Sequence record: ON529851.1
Length of the DNA stretch: 64,000 bases
Direction: 5' to 3' (one strand)
A model generated the notes under the pieces. It was not told where the DNA came from. It searched no databases and was given only the letters and a program-made list of their open reading frames with translations. Positions 5,528-55,972 of the stretch are shown one piece after another. The position numbers were made by a program, and so were the translations under genes. Each line of letters begins with the position of its first letter. Within the stretch, counting starts at the first letter, position 1.

Positions 5528-5896
5528 GGGGTTGCTCCCGTTGATGTGTGAGCATATTGCACGGCAAGGTCTTAACAACAAGTTAACGCCACGCAGATTT
5601 TTCAGCGGGCGGGCGGGCGTTAAGGTTAATGCGAAAGGCTCGCAAGGGGCGGCGTTAACCTTAACAGAATCGCCCGAAAAATTAACCACGCCCGTTGACG
5701 CTTTCTTAACGACTCGGCGCTAGGCTCAAGGGTTCCATAGCCACGCCTCGCGCCGGGTCCGACCCCCCGCGCGCGGTGGTCCGCGCTCGCCTCATCCGGG
5801 GCGGGGCGCCCGGCCACGCGCCCCGACATCAGGAGGCGCGAGCCCGCCCGGCTGGGCGGTCGATCGGTCATGCCGGCGGCCGCCAGGGCGGGGGTG

Positions 5897-6056
5897 CGTC
5901 GAATCGAAACGGCGTCAGGTCAAGTCGGCCGGCGTCAAATCGAAATGGCGTCAAGTCAAGTTTGATCGTGTCAAATCGAAATGGCGTCAAGTCAAGTTCG
6001 CCCGCGTCAAATCGAAACGGCGTCAGGTCAAGTTCGCCCGCGTCAAGTTTGATCCG
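5897..6056. repeat. 4 x 36-bp tandem repeat, two CGTCAA-type motifs per unit
   Basis: Units at 5897, 5933, 5969, 6005 (cgtcaaatcgaaayggcgtcargtcaagt...) plus partial at 6041. Confidence 0.95.
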
Positions 6057-6080
6057 CCAGGACCTGAGCGAAAACGAAGA

Positions 6081-6109
6081 CGCCCGGCGCGCATGAAAGC
6101 GGCCGGGCG
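6081..6109 (-). terminator. Intrinsic terminator
   Basis: CGCCCGGC...GCCGGGCG stem below the 22-aa peptide ORF. Confidence 0.6.
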
Positions 6110-6124
6110 TCAGGGGTCATCCGT

Positions 6125-6193
6125 TCAGAAACAGAGACCCACAATCATGAGGGCGAAAACGATCTTGGACGCGGAACAGAGTTTATCGAGCAT
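6125..6193 (-). CDS. 22-aa hydrophobic peptide MLDKLCSASKIVFALMIVGLCF
   Basis: AGAAGGAAG upstream, terminator downstream, paralog at 23546-23614. Confidence 0.65.
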   Translation of the reverse strand: MLDKLCSASKIVFALMIVGLCF

Positions 6194-6217: not shown

Positions 6218-6361
6218 GAGTCACGCCCGGTAGTAAACGTGACAGGTCGTGGGAACGCTACAGGGAGAAAACTCGCGAGTCATCGTTCGGGGCTAACGTG
6301 ACTGAACTATTTGTTAATCCGGGGCCGGGTCTGGAGTCACGCTGGGTGGGAAACGTGACTC
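6218..6361. repeat. Three 28-bp dyads AGTCACG-N12-CGTGAC
   Basis: Dyads start at 6218, 6277, 6334. Confidence 0.9.
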
Positions 6362-6374
6362 CGGGGTTTCGGTT

Positions 6375-7358
6375 TCAGGCCTCGGCTTGGCGGACGACCG
6401 TGGCGGCGGTCGTGCGGCTGGCGAACTGCTCGCTCGCGATGTCCCCCTTCAGCCCCTCAAAGGCCATGATGCTCGCCCTCAGGTCCGGGGTGATGTAGTC
6501 GGTCCCCTCAGCGGTCGCGTCCGCCTGAAACAGGTCCAGCAGGCGCGCCCGCACCCCGGCGGCGTCGTCCGCATAGAGGATCGGCGCGCCCTCCTGCTCG
6601 GGCTCGATCCGATACGGGCGCCGCTCGCACTCGATCTCGAACGGCCCTTGCCAGTTGCGGACCTCGACCGGCGCCAGGGCGGCGTCGGACAGTTCGTCAA
6701 AGACGCCGTTCTCACGGTCGCCGCATTCCTCGACCTCGGCCTGAGACACGAAGAACTCATGGCGGGCGTCGTCCGCCGCGATAGCGTGGTCCATGATCCA
6801 CGCCTGACCTTGGAAGGTCGCGCGATAGGGCAGGGTTTCGGGCGCCGGCAGGGCGGACGCCGGGGGGTCGCGGTCCATCCAGAAGCGGTAGAGGGCCGCC
6901 CAGGCGCGCGCCCGCTGGCGGTCGCCGGTCGCGGGCAGATAGGCGTCGTGCAGGGCCTCGGCGGCGGCGGCCCGGTCCGGGCCGTCCGGATCGGCCTGAT
7001 CCGCCTCATGGGCGTCGAAGGTCAGCAGGACGGCTTGCGTATGGCGGGCGGTCCATTCACCGGCCGGACCCGCCGCCAGAACCTCGCGCACCTCGGGGAG
7101 GGTCAGGTGGGAAAACTGGGCAGGGTCCCCGGCGATCAATTCCGCAGGGTCCCCGGCCTTGGATTCGGCAGGGTCCCCGGTGATGAATTGGGCAGGGTCC
7201 CCGGCGATGGATTCGGCAGGGTCCCCCCGCTCGATTCCGTCCGCGATGACATAGAGCCGACCGATGAGGCCTTGGGCGGCTTCCGGCGTGGGGTTGTGGC
7301 GCAGCGCCAGCACTTGGGCGGCGGCGGCGCGGATCAGGGCGGGATAGGTGGTGCTCAT
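6375..7358 (-). CDS. Hypothetical protein with 5 x GDPA 8-aa repeat
   Basis: ORF track; GGAG RBS; repeat encoded by a 24-bp GGGTCCC array. Confidence 0.8.
   Translation of the reverse strand: MSTTYPALIRAAAAQVLALRHNPTPEAAQGLIGRLYVIADGIERGDPAESIAGDPAQFITGDPAESKAGDPAELIAGDPAQFSHLTLPEVREVLAAGPAGEWTARHTQAVLLTFDAHEADQADPDGPDRAAAAEALHDAYLPATGDRQRARAWAALYRFWMDRDPPASALPAPETLPYRATFQGQAWIMDHAIAADDARHEFFVSQAEVEECGDRENGVFDELSDAALAPVEVRNWQGPFEIECERRPYRIEPEQEGAPILYADDAAGVRARLLDLFQADATAEGTDYITPDLRASIMAFEGLKGDIASEQFASRTTAATVVRQAEA
7123..7225. repeat. 5 x GGGTCCC at 24-bp period inside a CDS
   Basis: 7123, 7147, 7171, 7195, 7219. Confidence 0.95.
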
Positions 7359-24479: not shown

Positions 24480-24533
24480 TCACAAGGGCGTCGGTCGCAA
24501 GGCCGGCGCCCTTCGCCGCTGCGACCGGCTCGC

Positions 24534-24893
24534 GTTAACCTTAACAGGGCGTTAACCTTAACAACCCTGCCCGCTCTAGGGGTATGACCGGGTAGGGCCA
24601 GGTATGACCGGGTCATACCGGGGCGGATTCCCGCTGAAAATCACCCAAATTCGCCGAATTTCGCCCAAAATCGCCGGATTTTGACCTTAAATCACTGTTT
24701 TTACTCGATTTTTCAGGTTTTCAGGCGGTTCAGCGGCCGTTAACCTTAACAGGGCGTTAACCTTAACGCTGGAATGGTTAACGGGGCGTTAACCTTAACG
24801 CGGGGATGGTTAACGCGGTGTTAACCTTAACGCCCGGATGGTTAACGGGCCGTTTACCTTAACGCCGGGAGGGTTAACGCCCCCAGGGTTAAT
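24534..24893. promoter_or_regulatory. Dense gene-less cluster of TTAA boxes; GGTATGACC-G-GGTCATACC palindrome at 24601-24619
   Basis: Chained GTTAACCTTAAC and TTAA-N7-TTAA units. Confidence 0.75.
24631..24727. repeat. Phased A/T-tract segment, inverted relative of 25802-25893
   Basis: A/T tracts about every 10 bp; reverse complement aligns by eye with 25802-25893. Confidence 0.7.
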
Positions 24894-24901
24894 CCGGGGC
24901 G

Positions 24902-25137
24902 CGTCAAATCGGGCGCGCGTCAAATTCGGCCGGCGTCAAATCGAAACGGCGTCAAGTCAGGTCGGGCGCGTTGAAGCGCGCTCGCGTCAAATCCAGATCG
25001 CGTCAAATTCGCGGGGCGTCAAATCGCGCTCCCGTCAAATCGGCCGCGCGTCAAATTCGCAGGGCGTCAAATCGGCCGCGCGTCAAATCGGCGGGGCGTC
25101 AAGTCGACCAGGCGGCGTTGAAGCGCGCCGACGTCAA
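24902..25137. repeat. 13 x CGTCAA, mostly at 16-bp period
   Basis: 24902, 24918, 24934, 24950, 24985, 25001, 25017, 25033, 25049, 25065, 25081, 25097, 25132. Confidence 0.95.
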
Positions 25138-25340
25138 GTCGGGCTGCCAGGGCGCGCCCGAGCGGGCTTGCGCGGCGCTCCGCCTTCCAGGGAGGACGAC
25201 CCGGAAGAAACGGCCTGAAACGCGCCCTGACGCGTCTTTGTAGCCCAGGCAGGGGCGCGGTCAAGCCGAGCGGGGCCGGGAAGGCCGTTTTCCGGGCCGT
25301 GGAGCGCCCTGGCGCGGGCGCGGCGGCCGCAGGGTCGCCG

Positions 25341-25789
25341 GAGTCACGAAATCCATCCACGGGCCGGAAAACCAGGCCCTGCGGGCGATCGTCAGTCACG
25401 ATACCTATGAAGCGTGACTCTGCTTGGATTTTTGTCAGTCACGAAACCCGGAGGCGGGCTCCGCCGGCGATCCTGGCGCCCAGGCGGGTCAGCGTCAGCG
25501 GTTGTGTCAATGCAGGACACAATAAGGCGCGATTGCGGCGAAACAGGATTTCAGACCGGAGTCACGTTTGCCGGAATCGAGGCTTGGGGCTTTTGTTGAT
25601 TTCATTGAGGTTTTTCTGGAAATCGCCGCGAAACGGAGTCACGAAGTCCGTTGTGCAGTGCAGCAATGCGCCGGATTTGAGCGGGTCCAGGCGGGGCGAA
25701 ACAGAGTCACGTTTCCCTAAGCCCATGAGATCGTTTAGCTTTTCAGGCGGGGTCGGCACCTGAGTCACGTTAGACACCAACGATGACTC
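25341..25789. repeat. AGTCACG cluster including N12 dyads at 25393 and 25762
   Basis: Half sites at 25341, 25393, 25413(rev), 25436, 25559, 25636, 25704, 25762, 25782(rev, degenerate). Confidence 0.9.
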
Positions 25790-25868
25790 CGGCAACAGAG
25801 GCCCGAAAACAGGCAAAATCGCTGTAAAATCAGGTATTTAGGGGTATTTTCGGGGATTTTAGGCGAAT

Positions 25869-26051
25869 TCAGCGCCGTTTTCGGTGAAATCGGGCCACAG
25901 ACTGGCTGGGAAGGTCTTGCCGCCCCGCTGAACGCCCGGCACGCTGCCGATGTCGCCGCTTCCGCTCCCACGGCGTGGGGTGGATGATCTGGACCGCCCA
26001 GAAGAGCAGCAGAAGGAAGACCAGGCCGCCCATCACGATCGCTATCGCCAT
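25869..26051 (-). CDS. Small membrane protein with basic tail
   Basis: MAIAIVMGGLVFLLLLFWAVQ...; AGGAGAG RBS. Confidence 0.6.
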   Translation of the reverse strand: MAIAIVMGGLVFLLLLFWAVQIIHPTPWERKRRHRQRAGRSAGRQDLPSQSVARFHRKRR

Positions 26052-26084
26052 TTCGCGCTCTCCTGCCCCCTGGGGAAACACCCA

Positions 26085-26290
26085 GGGTCCCTGACGGAAA
26101 AATTCGGATGGGTCCCCGGTCAGGAATTCGCCAGGGTCCCTGGACGAAGAATTCCGAAGGGTCCCCGGCGGGAAAATTCGCCAGGGTCCCTCGACCAGAA
26201 AATCCCGATGGGTCCCCGCCCGGATTATCGCCAGGGTCCCTGGGCGAAGAATTCCGAAGGGTCCCCGGCCCGAAAATCCGGAAGGGTCCC
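26085..26290. repeat. 9 x GGGTCCC at 24-26-bp period with AATT/AAAAT spacers
   Basis: 26085, 26110, 26134, 26159, 26184, 26210, 26234, 26259, 26284. Confidence 0.95.
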
Positions 26291-26650
26291 CGCAGGCTAC
26301 CACGCGGCGGCCGGCGCCGCCATGGGCGCCCGGCGTTAACCTTAATGGGGCGTTAACCATCCCTGTTAAGGTTAACGCCGGGGCAGGCCCCGTTAACCCT
26401 TTGATCGTTAAGGTTAACGCCGGGTGAATCTGGCGCGAGATCGTTGACAGGCGACTCAGGCGGGGTGTCGCGCTTATGCCACAGTTGAGCGGCGCCTTTG
26501 ACTGTCAACGAATCGCGTCTGGAAATCGCTTCCAGCGGAGCCCCGGTTTTGGACCTCTTCCTGACCTTTCCTGGATCATATCCCAACATCCAAAGAAAAA
26601 GGCCGGTGCAGGGCACCGACCTCTTTCGAGTCAGACGGGAAGGGGCCGGA

Positions 26651-29374
26651 TCAGCCGAACGAGCCGATCTTGCGGGAGCCGAAGCGGGTCCGGGAACCCT
26701 TCATCCACTGGAGGGCCTGGGTCATGGCGTCCACTTGGTCGTCGTGCGCGCCTTCGGGGAACTGCCCGACTTCCTTGGTGAAGGCGTCCATCCACTCGGC
26801 CTTCTTGGGCAGGAAGACGTCGCCGGCGGTGATCAGCGGGCTGACCTCGTCGAAGCGGAATTCCTTGGACTGGCCCTTGGGGTCGATGCCGACGATGGGG
26901 GCCGGGGCCAGGCGGCGGTGGCTGGTGGTCTGCCCCCGGTTCTGGATGTAGGCGGTGCCCTGGCCCTTGTCTTCGACCAGGATCACATCGACGCCGTCCT
27001 TGACCGCCTGCTGCTCGATCATCTCGATCATGGCGTCGAACTCGACCTTCTTGCGGGTCTGGCGCAACAGGTAATACTGGCGGTCGTTGGTCTCGCCCCA
27101 GGTCTGCACGACCGTGTAGTCGGCCCGCTGGTTGACCTTGGCGGCGCAGTCGACCGACAGGACGATGCGGCGGAAGTGGGCGCGCTTGTTCGGGATCGCC
27201 TTGCCGTGCTCATCGACATGGCCCTCGGCGCGTTGCTGCTTCAGCGCCTCCTCGGTCAGGTGCGGGGGCCGCTCGTAATACTGGAAGCGGCCGGCGATCG
27301 AGTCGTCGGAGGTCGCGGTGGCGTTCTGCTGGTAGACCAGGGCGAAACGCTGGTAGGACCATTCCGTCTTCTTCGTCTTGAAGAACGACAGGTCGTAATA
27401 GTCCCACAGCACGTCGCCCAGCTTGCGCCCGAGCACGTCGGTGTCCTCGTCGATGCACAGGGCCGGGGCCTCGACCTGGGTCCACTGGGCGTAGGCCGGC
27501 AGACGCGGGTTCATCTCCATCAGGTGGCCCGTCAGGTCGTGCTCGTGGAAGCGCGTCATGATCAGGAACATCTTGCCGAAGGGCAGCATCCGCGAACCGA
27601 TGTCGCCGACGAACCAGGTGTTGACCTTCTCGCGGGCGGCGGCCGATTCCGCCTCCTCGATCTTGGCGTAGGGGTCATCGACGCAGGCGAAGTTGGCGCG
27701 GAAGCCGTGAACGGCCTGCCCGGTGCCCTTGGCGACATACTGCCCGCCGTAGCCGGCGATGGCCCATTGGTCGGCGGCGCGCGTGGCGTAGTCGACCACC
27801 ACCTCGGGGAAGACGCGACGGAACTCCTGACCGCCGACCAGGGAGCGAATCTTCTTGGAGAACTCGTTCTCGACGAAGCGCTGGCTGTGGCCGCCGCCGA
27901 TGATCTTCAGCTTGGGATTGCGGCCCAGGCGCCAGGCGACGAACAGGCGCGAGGCGTAGGTCGAGTTGTGCACCACCACGCCGTCGGCGGTGAAGGTGTG
28001 ATCGCCGAACACGGTCAGGCAGCGGCACTCGCCGACGCCGGCGGCCTCGACCATCGCCACCTTGTCCGTCACCTTCGAGCCGTAGGGCAGGCGCTTGGCG
28101 ATGAAGTCCGGTTCGTGGCGGCCGTGGAAACTGATCCCGGCGTCGAGCAGGCGTTCGATCGCCGGCCCGCGCACCACCAGGGCCGCGCGGCGGTTCGCCT
28201 GCGGATGCTCGACCACGGCGTCGACGTCGTAACGGGCCAGCAGCTTTTGCAGGTCCTGGGCGAAGTCGGCCGACTTGATCCAGGCGATCAGGGTGGCCTG
28301 GCTGTATTTCTTCGGCGTCTCGCCGCGCAGGCGGAAGTAGGTCGTCAGGAAGTGCTTGATCTTCTCGTCGTCGCCCCGGAACACGAACTCGGGCACGCGG
28401 CGCTCGCCGGCGCGCTTGGTCATACCGAGTAGTTCCTGGTAGGGCCGGGTCGTTTTCGAGCGCAGCCGGATCAGGTGGCGCTTGTTCGCCGGCACCCAGC
28501 GACGGGCGTAGCGGATGCCCAGGGCGTCCAGCACCCGCTCGGCCTCCTCGACATGGGCCAGGGAGGAGAACCACATCTGGAGGTTCTGGTAGGGGGTGCC
28601 GTTCGGCGCGGTCGCATCGGTGTAGGAGCCGAAGGCGGCGATGAAGGCGGCGAGGGCAAAGACGTCCTTGGGCTGACCGGACGTGTCCTCGGGTTTTTCC
28701 GGGGTATGGCTGGTCATACCGACCACGCTCAGGTTCATGCGCGGGCGCAGGTTCTGGGCTTCGATCCAGTCGCCGTCGACCAGGAAGGGGTGGTCCGGGG
28801 CCGACCAGATCGTGCGGCCCTTCTCGGTCGTGATCTTCAGCAGCGGCAGTTCGCCCTGAACGTGGACCGCCTCGACCTTGCGGCGGCGGCCGGCGTGGGT
28901 GACGACCTCTTCGCCGACCTCGATCTCGCCCAGGGGCTTGTAGGCGCCCGAGCCCATCAGCACCGGGGTCGAGACGTGCAGCGGCTTGGCGTGACCGGGC
29001 GGGCAGTTCAGGATGAAGCGATCCAGTTCAGGATCGTTCTCGATCTTCTGGAGCAGTTCGGTCAGGTAGATGTGCCACTTGGATTCCGGCGGCTCATCCG
29101 GCGAGACGTATTCGCAGAAGGCGTTGAAGTCGTCGCGCGCCAGCGGCAGCAGCCGCTCCAGGTGGCGCTTTTGCAGTTCGTCGCCCAGGCCCATCAGGGC
29201 GTCGATCTGCTGATTGACCTCCTGGACGCCGGTGATCTTGATGATCCCCTGGCGGGTGTTCTCGGGCAGGATCAGGCCGCGCTCGGCGGCGCGCTTGGCT
29301 TCGGCGGCGAGGTTGTGGAGTTGCTTGGTGGCCTGCCGCGCCTTGATGCGGTCGGCGATGATGTAGTCAGACAT
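26651..29374 (-). CDS. terL: Terminase large subunit with intein
   Basis: Walker A CPPGHAK|ST split by intein; Walker B FACVDDP; MTRFH; nuclease IVLSVDCA...HDDQVDA. Confidence 0.95.
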   Translation of the reverse strand: MSDYIIADRIKARQATKQLHNLAAEAKRAAERGLILPENTRQGIIKITGVQEVNQQIDALMGLGDELQKRHLERLLPLARDDFNAFCEYVSPDEPPESKWHIYLTELLQKIENDPELDRFILNCPPGHAKPLHVSTPVLMGSGAYKPLGEIEVGEEVVTHAGRRRKVEAVHVQGELPLLKITTEKGRTIWSAPDHPFLVDGDWIEAQNLRPRMNLSVVGMTSHTPEKPEDTSGQPKDVFALAAFIAAFGSYTDATAPNGTPYQNLQMWFSSLAHVEEAERVLDALGIRYARRWVPANKRHLIRLRSKTTRPYQELLGMTKRAGERRVPEFVFRGDDEKIKHFLTTYFRLRGETPKKYSQATLIAWIKSADFAQDLQKLLARYDVDAVVEHPQANRRAALVVRGPAIERLLDAGISFHGRHEPDFIAKRLPYGSKVTDKVAMVEAAGVGECRCLTVFGDHTFTADGVVVHNSTYASRLFVAWRLGRNPKLKIIGGGHSQRFVENEFSKKIRSLVGGQEFRRVFPEVVVDYATRAADQWAIAGYGGQYVAKGTGQAVHGFRANFACVDDPYAKIEEAESAAAREKVNTWFVGDIGSRMLPFGKMFLIMTRFHEHDLTGHLMEMNPRLPAYAQWTQVEAPALCIDEDTDVLGRKLGDVLWDYYDLSFFKTKKTEWSYQRFALVYQQNATATSDDSIAGRFQYYERPPHLTEEALKQQRAEGHVDEHGKAIPNKRAHFRRIVLSVDCAAKVNQRADYTVVQTWGETNDRQYYLLRQTRKKVEFDAMIEMIEQQAVKDGVDVILVEDKGQGTAYIQNRGQTTSHRRLAPAPIVGIDPKGQSKEFRFDEVSPLITAGDVFLPKKAEWMDAFTKEVGQFPEGAHDDQVDAMTQALQWMKGSRTRFGSRKIGSFG
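27965..28984 (-). mobile_element. 340-aa intein with degenerate LAGLIDADG domain, Pro1 (class 3-like)
   Basis: Starts PLHVSTPV, block B DHPF, block F CRCLTV, ends VVHN|S; LAAFIAAFGS and FLTTYFRLRG as decayed endonuclease motifs. Confidence 0.9.
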
Positions 29375-29378
29375 GCTG

Positions 29379-29615
29379 TCAGTAGGTCTCGTGGGTGTCG
29401 AGCGCTACGGCCGCCAGCAGGTCGTCGACGTGAAAGATGAGGTCCGCATCGCCGCGTTGGCGCGTCAGGTGACGAATGGTGCGGAGGGTGTTTTCCAGCC
29501 GCAGAATGCGGCGGCGAAGGCGCGAGGCGCGGAGCATCAGCCCCGCCACCCCGATCAGGTAGACCGCGCTCAGGGCGAGCATCGTCCACAGGAACGAAGG
29601 CGGCAGGTCAGGCAT
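29379..29615 (-). CDS. Small single-TM protein
   Basis: N-terminal hydrophobic helix; coupled between terS and terL. Confidence 0.7.
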   Translation of the reverse strand: MPDLPPSFLWTMLALSAVYLIGVAGLMLRASRLRRRILRLENTLRTIRHLTRQRGDADLIFHVDDLLAAVALDTHETY

Positions 29616-30307
29616 CAGGAGAAGTCCGGCTCATCGAAGGCTTCGAGCGGCTCCAGGGCGTCCAGCTTGCCCATCACGTCGGCGGCGCGCGCGTCGTCCA
29701 TCAGGGCGACGTCGGTCTCCGATCCGGTGGTCAGCTTGCGGTCGCTCGGCGCGACCCGTTCGGTCTTCTTGACGTGGCCCTGGATCAGTTCCATCGCCGT
29801 CTCGTGACCGAACTCGCGGCTCAGGTCGGCCTCGGACTTCTCGGCCTGGGGCAGGGCGTTGATGGCGTCGCCCAGCATCACGTCCAGCTTGTCCAGGTCG
29901 AAGGACTGCGGCACGCTCGATCCGGTGTCGTCGCCCTGGCCGCCCGAGAACATGCCCAGGTCCTTGCCGATCAGTTCCAGGGCCGCGTTGGACTCCTTGA
30001 ACTGTCCGTCGGCCGCCGCGTTCTGGGCGTTCTCGGCCAGCTTCTGGATCACGAAGGCGCGGCTGACGCCGGTCATCTGTCCGACGACCTTGGCGGCTTC
30101 GACGGCGGCGAGCCGCTGGGATTCACGCTGGGCCTTCTGTTCCTCGAACAGTTCTTCGATCCGGGCGATGACGTCCGGGTCGGTTTCCAGGTGCTGGGTG
30201 GAGGAGCCGGGCGCATAGCCGGCGGCGAGCGCGGCTTTCGCGGCGTTCATACCCTTGGCGCGGTGGCGCGCGTAGAGTTCGTTGCGTTCGTTGGCGAGTC
30301 TTGCCAC
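29615..30307 (-). CDS. terS: Terminase small subunit-like protein
   Basis: N-terminal ELYARHRAKGMNAAKAALAAGY helix-turn-helix typical of TerS; upstream of terL. Confidence 0.7.
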   Translation of the reverse strand: MARLANERNELYARHRAKGMNAAKAALAAGYAPGSSTQHLETDPDVIARIEELFEEQKAQRESQRLAAVEAAKVVGQMTGVSRAFVIQKLAENAQNAAADGQFKESNAALELIGKDLGMFSGGQGDDTGSSVPQSFDLDKLDVMLGDAINALPQAEKSEADLSREFGHETAMELIQGHVKKTERVAPSDRKLTTGSETDVALMDDARAADVMGKLDALEPLEAFDEPDFS

Positions 30308-50798: not shown

Positions 50799-51947
50799 AT
50801 GAGCGGCACTGACCTGCGCGTGCGCGCGCACATCACCTATTCTGTCACGTCCTATCATGAGACGGGCAAAACCGGCACAAGCCGGGAAGCGGGCTCCGGC
50901 TTCTCGTTGGACTCCGCCAACGCCATCGCCGAGGCCCTTTACGGCGTGTCTTCCCAGCCCCGCGCCCTGTATCAGATCGCGGTGAATGAACAGGTGCATG
51001 ACACCGCCCAACCCAGCGGCGCCCAGCCCGACTGGCTGGCGAGCGCCGCCGCATGGCTCGCACTTCGCCCGGCGGGCACCCTCATGACGGTGGAACGGGT
51101 CGACGCCGGCGACCGGATGGGCACGCGCCTGACCACCTACGAGCCGGTCAAGACACGCAGCGCGCCCGAAGTCTTCACGATCAAAACCTCAGGGTTTGAT
51201 CTGAAGGGCGGCCTGGGTGATCTCCAGAGTGTCGCTGATACGGTCAAGGACTCCATTATGCGCGAGATCAGCCGCATCAACCTGCCCGAGCGGTGGGAGG
51301 ACCTGTCGAGCGAAACCACCCGGCGTGGGCTGGAAGCCTTCATGGCGGTCCAGACGGTGGGCAAGGATGCCTGGCGGGATCATGAGATCGAGGGGATGGT
51401 CAACCGCATCGCTCAGCGCACCGGCAAGGCCAAGATCGACCTGCGGCGTATGTTTGAGAACGCCCAGGAGCGGGTGATGGAGGCCAAACGCATCCTGGCG
51501 GACGCCGTCCCGACCACGGCGCCCCTGACCGCGCGTGAAGAGCATTACTGCAAGAACCGCGCGAAGGGCTGTTCGCCTGTGGTCGCCGCGCGTTATGCCG
51601 GCTACCTCAGCGACTGGCGCTCGACGTTCAACGTGGGCGGACTCGAAAACTCGCCCCCGATCCAGGCGCGGATCGCGGAACTGATCACCGCCAAGGCTCC
51701 GGCCGAAGCCACGCCCCAAGCCCTGCCCGCCGGCGCCGCCCGCCTCGACAACGCCACGCAGGAGTTCTTCGCCCTGAACATCGGCTTCTACGGCATGACG
51801 GTCGAGGCGGCCGCCAAGCAGATGAGCCTGCCGCTGGAAACGGCGGACGGTCTGATGGAGATGCCGACGGTGAAGGCGCGGATCAAGTTCTTCCAGCGCA
51901 CGCTCCGGGCAAACGTCGAGGCCTTCCGCGCGGAAGGGCCGCAATGA
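50799..51947 (+). CDS. Protein with TerS-like helix-turn-helix segment(s)
   Basis: EEHYCKNRAKGCSPVVAARYAGY; AAAGGA RBS. Confidence 0.7.
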   Translation: MSGTDLRVRAHITYSVTSYHETGKTGTSREAGSGFSLDSANAIAEALYGVSSQPRALYQIAVNEQVHDTAQPSGAQPDWLASAAAWLALRPAGTLMTVERVDAGDRMGTRLTTYEPVKTRSAPEVFTIKTSGFDLKGGLGDLQSVADTVKDSIMREISRINLPERWEDLSSETTRRGLEAFMAVQTVGKDAWRDHEIEGMVNRIAQRTGKAKIDLRRMFENAQERVMEAKRILADAVPTTAPLTAREEHYCKNRAKGCSPVVAARYAGYLSDWRSTFNVGGLENSPPIQARIAELITAKAPAEATPQALPAGAARLDNATQEFFALNIGFYGMTVEAAAKQMSLPLETADGLMEMPTVKARIKFFQRTLRANVEAFRAEGPQ

Positions 51948-54397: not shown

Positions 54398-54739
54398 TCA
54401 AGCCGCCAGAGCGGCGATGGTCAAGGCGACCGCCGCCAGCGTGATCATCTTGCCCGATCCCCTGATCAGGCTGTCGCCATAGGAGAGCGAGGCCGGGTCG
54501 CCCCAACTCCGGCGCTCCCGCCCCGCGAGCGTCATCATGCCCGCGAACAGGGCGAGGAAGCCTGCGGTCGCCAGGAAGGTCAGGACGACCCACCCCACCG
54601 ACAGCGGGAAGAAGGCGAACATGCCCCAGACCAGAAATAGGCCCAAGGTGAATCCGCCTTCGATGTCCCGGTGCAGGGGTTCGTAGTCGGCGGCCGCCAT
54701 GCGGGCCGAGGCGAGACGCAGGTGCGTTTCATGATTCAT
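54398..54739 (-). CDS. Multi-TM protein
   Basis: Hydrophobic; AAGGAG RBS. Confidence 0.7.
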   Translation of the reverse strand: MNHETHLRLASARMAAADYEPLHRDIEGGFTLGLFLVWGMFAFFPLSVGWVVLTFLATAGFLALFAGMMTLAGRERRSWGDPASLSYGDSLIRGSGKMITLAAVALTIAALAA

Positions 54740-55562: not shown

Positions 55563-55972
55563 GAGGACCCTTTCAGTTCGGGTGGAAGTTCAAACAGGCG
55601 GCGCTCGCCGGCCCGGTCGCGCCAGGCGTTGATCATCGCGATGGAGGCGGCGTATCCGGTGATCTCGGCGTCCATCGACGGGGTCAGCTTGAAGGCGGCG
55701 CGCAGGGCCTGCGCCCTGGGGTCTTCCCGCATCTGCATCAGGTGCTTGGACAGCACCTTCAAGGGATGGGGCCGGAACAGCAGGATGTCGAGGATGATCG
55801 ACAGGTTCGACCGCCCCGCCTGGTTCATGACCGTATCGTGGATGGCGGTGTTCACAGCGGCGGCGCCCATCCCCGGATTGACGCCGAAGGCTCGACAGAC
55901 AGGCGCGGCGATCTCAGGGTTCGCCAGCAGGTAGCGCACCAGGACGTTCACCGCGTCAGGACGACCGCTCAC
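55559..55972 (-). CDS. Hypothetical protein
   Basis: Coupled ORF. Confidence 0.75.
   Translation of the reverse strand: MSGRPDAVNVLVRYLLANPEIAAPVCRAFGVNPGMGAAAVNTAIHDTVMNQAGRSNLSIILDILLFRPHPLKVLSKHLMQMREDPRAQALRAAFKLTPSMDAEITGYAASIAMINAWRDRAGERRLFELPPELKGSS

Follow-up and report, generated by a model that had tools for sequence, protein, structure and literature searches.

The stretch of DNA analysed here (64,000 nt, the window) is 100% identical over its whole length to the genome of Brevundimonas phage vB_BpoS-Marchewka (ON529851.1), in which it occupies record positions 62001-126000; a record position is the window position plus 62000. Marchewka is a jumbo siphophage of 348,421 bp that belongs to the Dolichocephalovirinae (the phiCbK subfamily). 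Four close relatives, Bambus, Domovoi, Kabachok and Papperlapapp, share 84-94% identity with it, and the Caulobacter phages CcrColossus and the phiCbK/CcrSwift group are more distantly related. Phages of the phiCbK type are standard tools of Caulobacter biology, and to our knowledge almost nothing is known about the timing of their genes beyond CtrA boxes and XRE factors.

In a part of the window where all genes lie on the minus strand, we found three tandem copies of the inverted repeat AGTCACG-N12-CGTGACT (Table 1). Read in gene direction, the stop codon of CDS MARCHEWKA_01340 is followed after 12 nt by dyad 3, and then by dyad 2, dyad 1, a ribosome-binding sequence and a small ORF of 22 aa, after which come a GC-rich hairpin, a block of GTCAAGT/GTCAAATCGAAA tandem repeats and CDS 01330. 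The sequence-only reading that had first pointed to these dyads gave them spacers of exactly 12 nt and starts 59 and 57 bp apart, and both values hold for the triple. All five N12 dyads that it listed, here and at a second locus, are present, at coordinates that it had placed one base early by including a flanking G. The amino acid sequence of the 22-aa ORF is kept in four relatives. CcrColossus has its own triple of N12 dyads (11843, 11876 and 11916), followed by the counterpart of the small ORF, the hydrophobic 24-aa gp022, and then by an annotated terminator at the place that matches the GC-rich hairpin.

Other repeats occur near the triple and elsewhere in the genome. Alternating GGGTCCC(C) repeats with a period of ~25 nt are found at window 26085-26290 and 7123-7225 and at record 55684-55791. 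The copy at 7123-7225 lies within annotated CDS 01340 and is translated as DPAE(S/L)IAG repeats; because this repeat is non-coding in CcrSwift and phiCbK, directly after terL, the 5' part of CDS 01340 is doubtful. At intervals of 16-36 nt, CGTCAA(A/G)T iterons in tandem arrays border both dyad loci (window 5891-6046 and 24885-25140) as well as a third locus (record 54454-54660), and have equivalents in CcrColossus (1380-1520) and CcrSwift. These arrays look like origin-type or protein-loading iterons.

Table 1. Coordinates of the dyads, half-sites and neighbouring features. Positions refer to the window unless a phage is named.
Feature	Position	Strand	Details
Dyad 3	6335..6360	-	perfect (0 mismatches); first in gene direction
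Dyad 2	6278..6303	-	2 mismatches; one arm is the recurrent variant AGTCATCG, invariant in five phages
Dyad 1	6219..6244	-	1 mismatch; ends 25 nt before the small-ORF ATG
Small ORF, hydrophobic, unannotated (MLDKLCSASKIVFALMIVGLCF)	6125..6193	-	22 aa; ribosome-binding sequence GAAGGAAG
GC-rich hairpin with T-rich tail	6066..6111	-	ends the small-ORF unit
Repeat-rich stretch downstream of terL	24480..26650		~2.2 kb; holds the half-site array
Isolated half-site GGAGTCACGAAATCC	25342..25348	+	AGTCACG search
N12 dyad	25394..25419	+	0 mismatches; right arm in relatives either CGTGACT or CGATGACT
Isolated half-site CAGTCACGAAACCC	25437..25443	+	AGTCACG search
Isolated half-site GGAGTCACGTTTGCC	25560..25566	+	AGTCACG search
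Isolated half-site GGAGTCACGAAGTCC	25637..25643	+	AGTCACG search
Isolated half-site AGAGTCACGTTTCCC	25705..25711	+	AGTCACG search
N12 dyad	25763..25788	+	2 mismatches; AGTCATCG variant arm; kept in five phages
Dyad ~105 nt before capsid-gene ATG	Marchewka 28636; CcrColossus 39624; CcrSwift 30816
Dyad at PhoH/next gene boundary	Marchewka 345310; CcrColossus 71545; CcrSwift 54079
Dyad at tail tube/chaperone boundary	Marchewka 341367; CcrColossus 75498; CcrSwift 58013
Dyad before lectin-like head gene	CcrColossus 48759; CcrSwift 36754		not found in Marchewka
Isolated 12-mer after RNA ligase gene	CcrColossus 136381; Marchewka 271673
Isolated 12-mer ahead of nrdA	CcrColossus 116000; Marchewka 287380
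Isolated 12-mer after DNA polymerase gene	CcrColossus 124541; Marchewka 296399

The second locus is an array of eight co-oriented half-sites in the non-coding leader adjoining the predicted genome end, 0.85-1.3 kb from the terL stop, and the isolated half-sites that the sequence-only reading had mentioned there are real. The sole annotated CDS in the repeat-rich stretch is a doubtful 71-aa ORF (window 25562-25777). Also present in this stretch are AT-rich segments, CGTCAAATCG iterons, arrays of GTTAAC, which resembles the CtrA box, and GGGTCCC repeats that recur about every 25 nt. Dense arrays of GTTAACCTTAAC and TTAA-N7-TTAAC units, which match the CtrA box, lie at window 24534-24565, 24739-24880 and 26335-26420; CtrA binding at sites of this type has been published for phiCbK-type phages (PMC9437464). 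A palindrome, TGTGTCAATGCAGGACACA (window 25503-25521), sits in the middle of the half-site array and is almost invariant in five phages. Between the GGGTCCC repeats and the array is an unannotated ORF of 60 aa (window 25869-26051, minus strand) with an N-terminal membrane helix and a basic tail, and CcrSwift carries gp001, also a small membrane ORF, at the equivalent position.

For CcrColossus, the genome ends are known from experiment (PMC3556154). Its first 1.9 kb contain repeat families in the same order as the Marchewka region read outwards from terL, with a dyad at 654, which is the counterpart of the Marchewka dyad at 25763..25788, and half-sites at 727, 854 and 886, so that the CcrColossus array lies 654-890 bp from the mapped left terminus. 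The matching leader of CcrSwift has a dyad at 1236 and half-sites at 1560. On the basis of this shared order with a genome of mapped ends, the physical left end of Marchewka probably lies just downstream of terL, beyond the right edge of the repeat-rich stretch; an alignment of the CcrColossus terminus to Marchewka revealed no conserved junction. Marchewka and CcrColossus are colinear in gene order across this region, and the CcrColossus triple is internal to its terminal repeat, at 11.8 kb of 16.7 kb. By this comparison, the Marchewka triple is probably likewise inside a predicted long terminal repeat and not at a repeat boundary.

With up to two mismatches allowed, AGTCACG-N12-CGTGACT has five matches against 0.28 expected, a number that none of 100 shuffles reached, and these five, all at the two window loci, are the only N12 dyads in the whole genome. 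Confinement to the two loci is a property of the N12 form only: a whole-genome scan with a variable spacer recovered five N13 dyads, at record 28636, 258545, 299030, 341367 and 345310, all outside the window. The core of the element can be written as AGTCAYG-N12/13-CRTGACT, and its extended half-site is the 12-mer GAGTCACGTTTC. Exact copies of this 12-mer number six in Marchewka and 12 in CcrColossus, where a calculation for a random 12-mer on both strands gives an expectation of ~0.04. Altogether, Marchewka has 10 dyads and at least six isolated 12-mers, and CcrColossus has more. Across the lineages the spacer is N12 or N13, and also N11 in CcrSwift.

The half-sites of the triple are invariant in five close phages (84-94% identical), whilst the spacers and flanks vary and the gaps between dyads are shorter by 21 and 22 bp in Kabachok and Papperlapapp. 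The half-site array is likewise kept, with a rearrangement in Kabachok, where one half-site is duplicated and two isolated half-sites are missing. A metagenome contig of a relative differs at 37 positions in 306 nt; of these differences 34 are listed, and all 34 lie outside the half-site cores. The element is widespread among metagenomic relatives. In the sequencing runs with phage DNA the phage share was at most 0.09, and the contigs, sparse DNA carry-over at a depth of 2-4, showed no genome ends. All four close relatives have the five N13 dyads at equivalent places, and several dyads and isolated 12-mers have equivalents at the same gene boundaries in the Caulobacter phages (Table 1). A further dyad precedes the DNA polymerase gene, well away from the genome end. 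The dyads, then, are copies of a lineage-specific cis element that is conserved in the phiCbK subfamily. A full-text literature search returned no description of the motif, nor is it mentioned by Gill et al. 2012.

The leader that runs from the dyad to the start of the capsid gene (record 28530-28640) is itself strongly conserved in Marchewka, CcrColossus and CcrSwift, and contains a ATTCCCTCGG...CCGAGGGG stem. This leader probably stabilises the mRNA or is a regulatory structure.

The placement of the element follows the genes. Eighteen of the 24 mapped sites begin 0-14 nt past the stop codon of the preceding gene in the same direction, or overlap this stop codon, and the next start codon follows at a distance of 0-211 nt. 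Every isolated 12-mer is oriented with transcription (12 of 12 in CcrColossus), and their orientation switches wherever gene direction switches. The dyad at the PhoH boundary must be transcribed, as a conserved start codon is only 14-22 nt away. At 258545, the Marchewka 'dyad' is located inside a conserved sigma-70-type promoter, TTGACA-N17-TATGTG, of the gene for a small tyrosine recombinase; its half-sites occupy the interval from the -35 to the -10 element, where Marchewka has them in inverted and CcrColossus in direct orientation. The distance from a dyad to the TTGACA of the downstream promoter varies between orthologues (13 vs 23 nt, and 52 vs 64 nt).

A sigma-70 promoter scan found none at either window dyad locus, an intrinsic-terminator scan called no dyad, and neither locus matched Rfam or known RNA families. 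Sequences downstream of dyads are not T-rich, the window dyads lack a T-run, and only CcrColossus 48759 has a T-rich tail. We rejected the intrinsic terminator as an explanation because the window dyads lack the U-tract that would directly follow a GC-rich hairpin. The half-site as a phage promoter was also rejected as the main reading, since dyads would fire convergently; no phage RNA polymerase has been reported for the subfamily (PMC3556154).

Our preferred model, to which we assign a probability of about 45%, is that the element is an operator- or 'stoperator'-like site for a putative phage-encoded DNA-binding regulator of transcription at gene boundaries. From the occurrence, conservation, position and orientation of the sites, we infer a double-stranded DNA target, a binder encoded by the phage and an effect on transcription. 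A putative phage protein would recognise each half-site through a single subunit and would occupy a dyad with two. The phage would place the element at the downstream edges of coding regions and inside at least one promoter, where the bound protein would control the host RNA polymerase, either by blocking or gating read-through or by repressing initiation. The three tandem copies would gate the tiny hydrophobic-peptide gene within the predicted terminal repeat.

Several lines of evidence argue for a DNA-binding protein. The element is rare (five N12 and five N13 dyads in 348 kb), its half-sites are invariant whilst spacers and flanks change, and its placement is matched in CcrColossus, CcrSwift and Marchewka. 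Conserved isolated half-sites are unable to form a hairpin, half-sites occur inside the recombinase promoter, and the clustered copies are invariant despite weak hairpins. The lack of a T-run after the window dyads and of any Rfam match points the same way, and the stoperators of phage L5 provide a precedent (PMC9283540). The sequence-only reading had proposed binding sites for a dimeric protein, TerS or a recombinase, and the part that survives is a sequence-specific, probably dimeric binder, which fits the invariance of the half-sites. A phage rather than a host regulator is favoured by a search for the perfect extended palindrome in 185,579 genomes, which returned 24 scattered matches, none of them in Caulobacter or Brevundimonas; with the perfect palindrome in no Caulobacterales chromosome, a host regulon is unlikely. 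What argues against a DNA-binding protein is the variable spacer (N11-N13), which is unusual for a rigid dimer, and the anchoring to the upstream stop codon and not to a downstream promoter. In a wider and rather unlikely extension of the model, elongation control would be genome-wide and orientation-dependent: one factor would read GAGTCACGTTTC at cistron ends and also organise the terminal-repeat leader, by way of the triple that would gate a tiny membrane peptide and of the half-site array next to the packaging end, coupling the timing of expression to the state of the genome end.

The main rival, possible though somewhat unlikely, is a stem-loop in the transcript, with a conserved lower stem AGUCACG/CGUGACU right after the stop codon, that acts as a factor-dependent attenuator, processing site or stabiliser. 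Such a stem-loop would set the relative expression of neighbouring cistrons, and the small ORF would have three such hairpins, the triple, in its leader. The stop-codon anchoring of 18 of the 24 sites and the necessarily transcribed PhoH-boundary copy speak for RNA and against an operator, as do the copies at CcrColossus 48759 and CcrSwift 36754, which are annotated as rho-independent terminators in their records. A loop of free length would accommodate N11-N13, and the variant arm CGATGACT, which recurs with the same polarity, can be taken as a 3' arm with a bulged A. The folding energies of single copies are -12 to -22 kcal/mol, and their inner arms co-vary, as expected of a selected hairpin: at arm positions 10-13, both sides had changed in 29 cells, where shuffles gave 16.1 +/- 3.1 (0 of 500), and the upper-stem pairs at matching sites include TTTCC/GGAAA, ATCCC/GGGAT, ATTCC/GGAAT and TTAGCC/GGCTAA. 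This covariation, however, partly tracks lineage, and some sites are hybrids that combine an AAAC arm with a TTTG arm. Folding does not favour the sense strand (-306 vs -295 kcal/mol for the antisense, summed over 24 sites, which is not significant), and among position-6 variants on the sense strand C.A mismatches (five) are as common as G.U pairs (three). The clustered copies, although invariant, would form poor hairpins, with C.A mismatches and energies of -5 to -11 kcal/mol. Isolated 12-mers and left-end half-sites are conserved without a partner, the half-sites inside the promoter are upstream of the start site, and a U-tract is absent. The invariant outer half-sites are most likely read sequence-specifically, on DNA, whilst some single copies may additionally be selected to fold.

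A packaging signal bound by TerS or terminase, comparable to cosB or pac, would explain the two window clusters and leave the other copies as unrelated re-use, and we consider it improbable. The distance of the array from the terL stop, the CcrColossus array close to the mapped left terminus and the CcrSwift copy at 1236 fit such a signal; TerS is kept in all three lineages, and arrays of repeated sites would suit an oligomeric TerS ring. Yet conserved gene boundaries far from the end hold at least 10 further copies, the triple is separated from terL by ~20 kb in Marchewka and lies within the repeat in CcrColossus, and co-orientation flips between modules, unlike a one-directional packaging signal. 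The earlier suggestion of a role for TerS alone is contradicted by the copies elsewhere in the genome, at record 28.6, 258.5, 299.0, 341.4 and 345.3 kb, although the half-site array beside terL could serve packaging.

It is very improbable that the dyads are core sites of the phage small tyrosine recombinase (record 257840-258514; Pfam Phage_integrase, E 1.9e-19). Perfect copies do show 11-bp arms and 6-7-bp spacers, like dif or lox-type sites, one copy is at the promoter of the recombinase gene, and the recombinase is kept in all three lineages. Nevertheless, the inner parts of the window copies are non-palindromic, many sites per genome would invite deletions, and neither stop-codon anchoring nor the co-orientation of isolated arms is explained; the site at the recombinase gene is better read as a promoter operator. 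The likeness to resolvase res sites drawn in the sequence-only reading did not hold up either. A res site has three dyad subsites with unequal spacers and adjoins a serine recombinase gene, whereas the three Marchewka dyads have equal 12-nt spacers and no serine recombinase gene adjoins them: the genes flanking the triple contain no Pfam recombinase domain.

If the element is an operator-like site, the phage genomes offer several candidate binders. One is a CI-like (CI/C2-type) repressor homologue (record 280729-281445; HTH_3), which matches phrog_4 over its full length and is kept in all three lineages. The region upstream of its own gene carries a different, conserved palindrome, TCTGGC-N11-GCCAGA, again in all three lineages, which counts against the DNA-binding reading with this candidate. 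In the 382-aa protein encoded at window 50799-51947 (plus strand), residues 246-297 hold a short helix-turn-helix stretch that resembles the TerS N-terminus and is possibly repeated further along; CcrColossus and CcrSwift carry the motif but lack a homologue of this protein. For one stretch of the protein there is a paralogous match at record 228.5 kb. The candidates also include TerS itself (window 29615-30307), the small tyrosine recombinase and a T5 A1-like protein. Outside this set of candidates, record 278355-279740 encodes an RNA-binding protein of the Ro60/TROVE type, with a vWA domain, that is 70% identical between Marchewka and CcrColossus.

The observation that most halves contain GANTC is borne out, with GAGTC in 11 of the 15 halves at the two loci. 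GANTC is depleted across the Marchewka genome (655 observed vs 1098 expected), and GAGTC plus GACTC further still (253 vs 746 expected), as is the case in CcrColossus and CcrSwift; against this depletion the GAGTC of the half-sites stands out. The proposed methylation sensitivity is not a feature of the family, as the CcrSwift copies AAGTCACG/TAGTCACG are without GANTC, and an effect in the Marchewka lineage is possible. On the same grounds we rejected dependence on GcrA/CcrM as a family feature. The extended GcrA motif does not fit the dyad.

The element has partial parallels in well-known systems. In the OR and OL regions of phage lambda, three tandem dyad operator sites lie ahead of a gene; Marchewka resembles this arrangement in having a triple ahead of a gene and in encoding a CI-like homologue. 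Unlike those of lambda, the Marchewka sites are 26 bp long with half-sites about two helical turns apart, their spacing is not conserved, they have no divergent promoter pair, and the palindrome upstream of the CI-like gene is another one. The lambda cosB R sites and pac are repeated TerS-bound sites near terL and the genome end, whereas the Marchewka element also occurs throughout the structural and replication modules. REP/BIME elements and the RNase III sites of phage T7 are conserved intergenic palindromes, single or clustered, that follow genes and can shape mRNA stability. Unlike REP/BIME, the Marchewka element has a lower stem that is invariant across genera, and its sites are orthologous and not mobile.

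Closer parallels are found among phages of other groups. The asymmetric stoperators of mycobacteriophage L5 are found in short gaps between genes, are oriented with transcription and double as promoter operators (PMC9283540). Like these stoperators of the Cluster A mycobacteriophages, which a monomeric repressor (L5 gp71) binds to stop elongation, the Marchewka element is present in many copies in short intergenic spaces and promoters, its isolated 12-mers follow transcription as asymmetric units, and the effect proposed is on both initiation and elongation (PMC9283540). It differs in occurring also as near-symmetric inverted pairs (N12/N13), and in belonging to virulent jumbo phages of Caulobacterales, unlike the temperate Cluster A phages. 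The 17-bp palindromes of the Cluster O mycobacteriophages (TGTTCGG-N3-CCGAACA), which are prolate-headed siphophages, are also invariant inverted repeats with a variable centre that are mostly intergenic, present in tens of copies and unexplained in function (PMC4351075). They have another sequence and a much shorter spacer, about one-third of the copies are inside genes, and stop-codon anchoring or oriented half-sites have not been reported for them (PMC4351075).

Overall, the element represents a concrete cis-regulatory code of ~10-25 sites per genome that extends over three genera and metagenomic relatives, marking the boundaries of capsid, tail and replication genes as well as the terminal-repeat leader. 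For annotators, some of the 'terminators' in these genomes are members of a sequence-specific family, and the analysis also points to two unannotated genes for small membrane peptides. The identity of the binder would open the early-to-late switch to testing, and would show whether stoperator-like control of elongation exists beyond the temperate actinophages.
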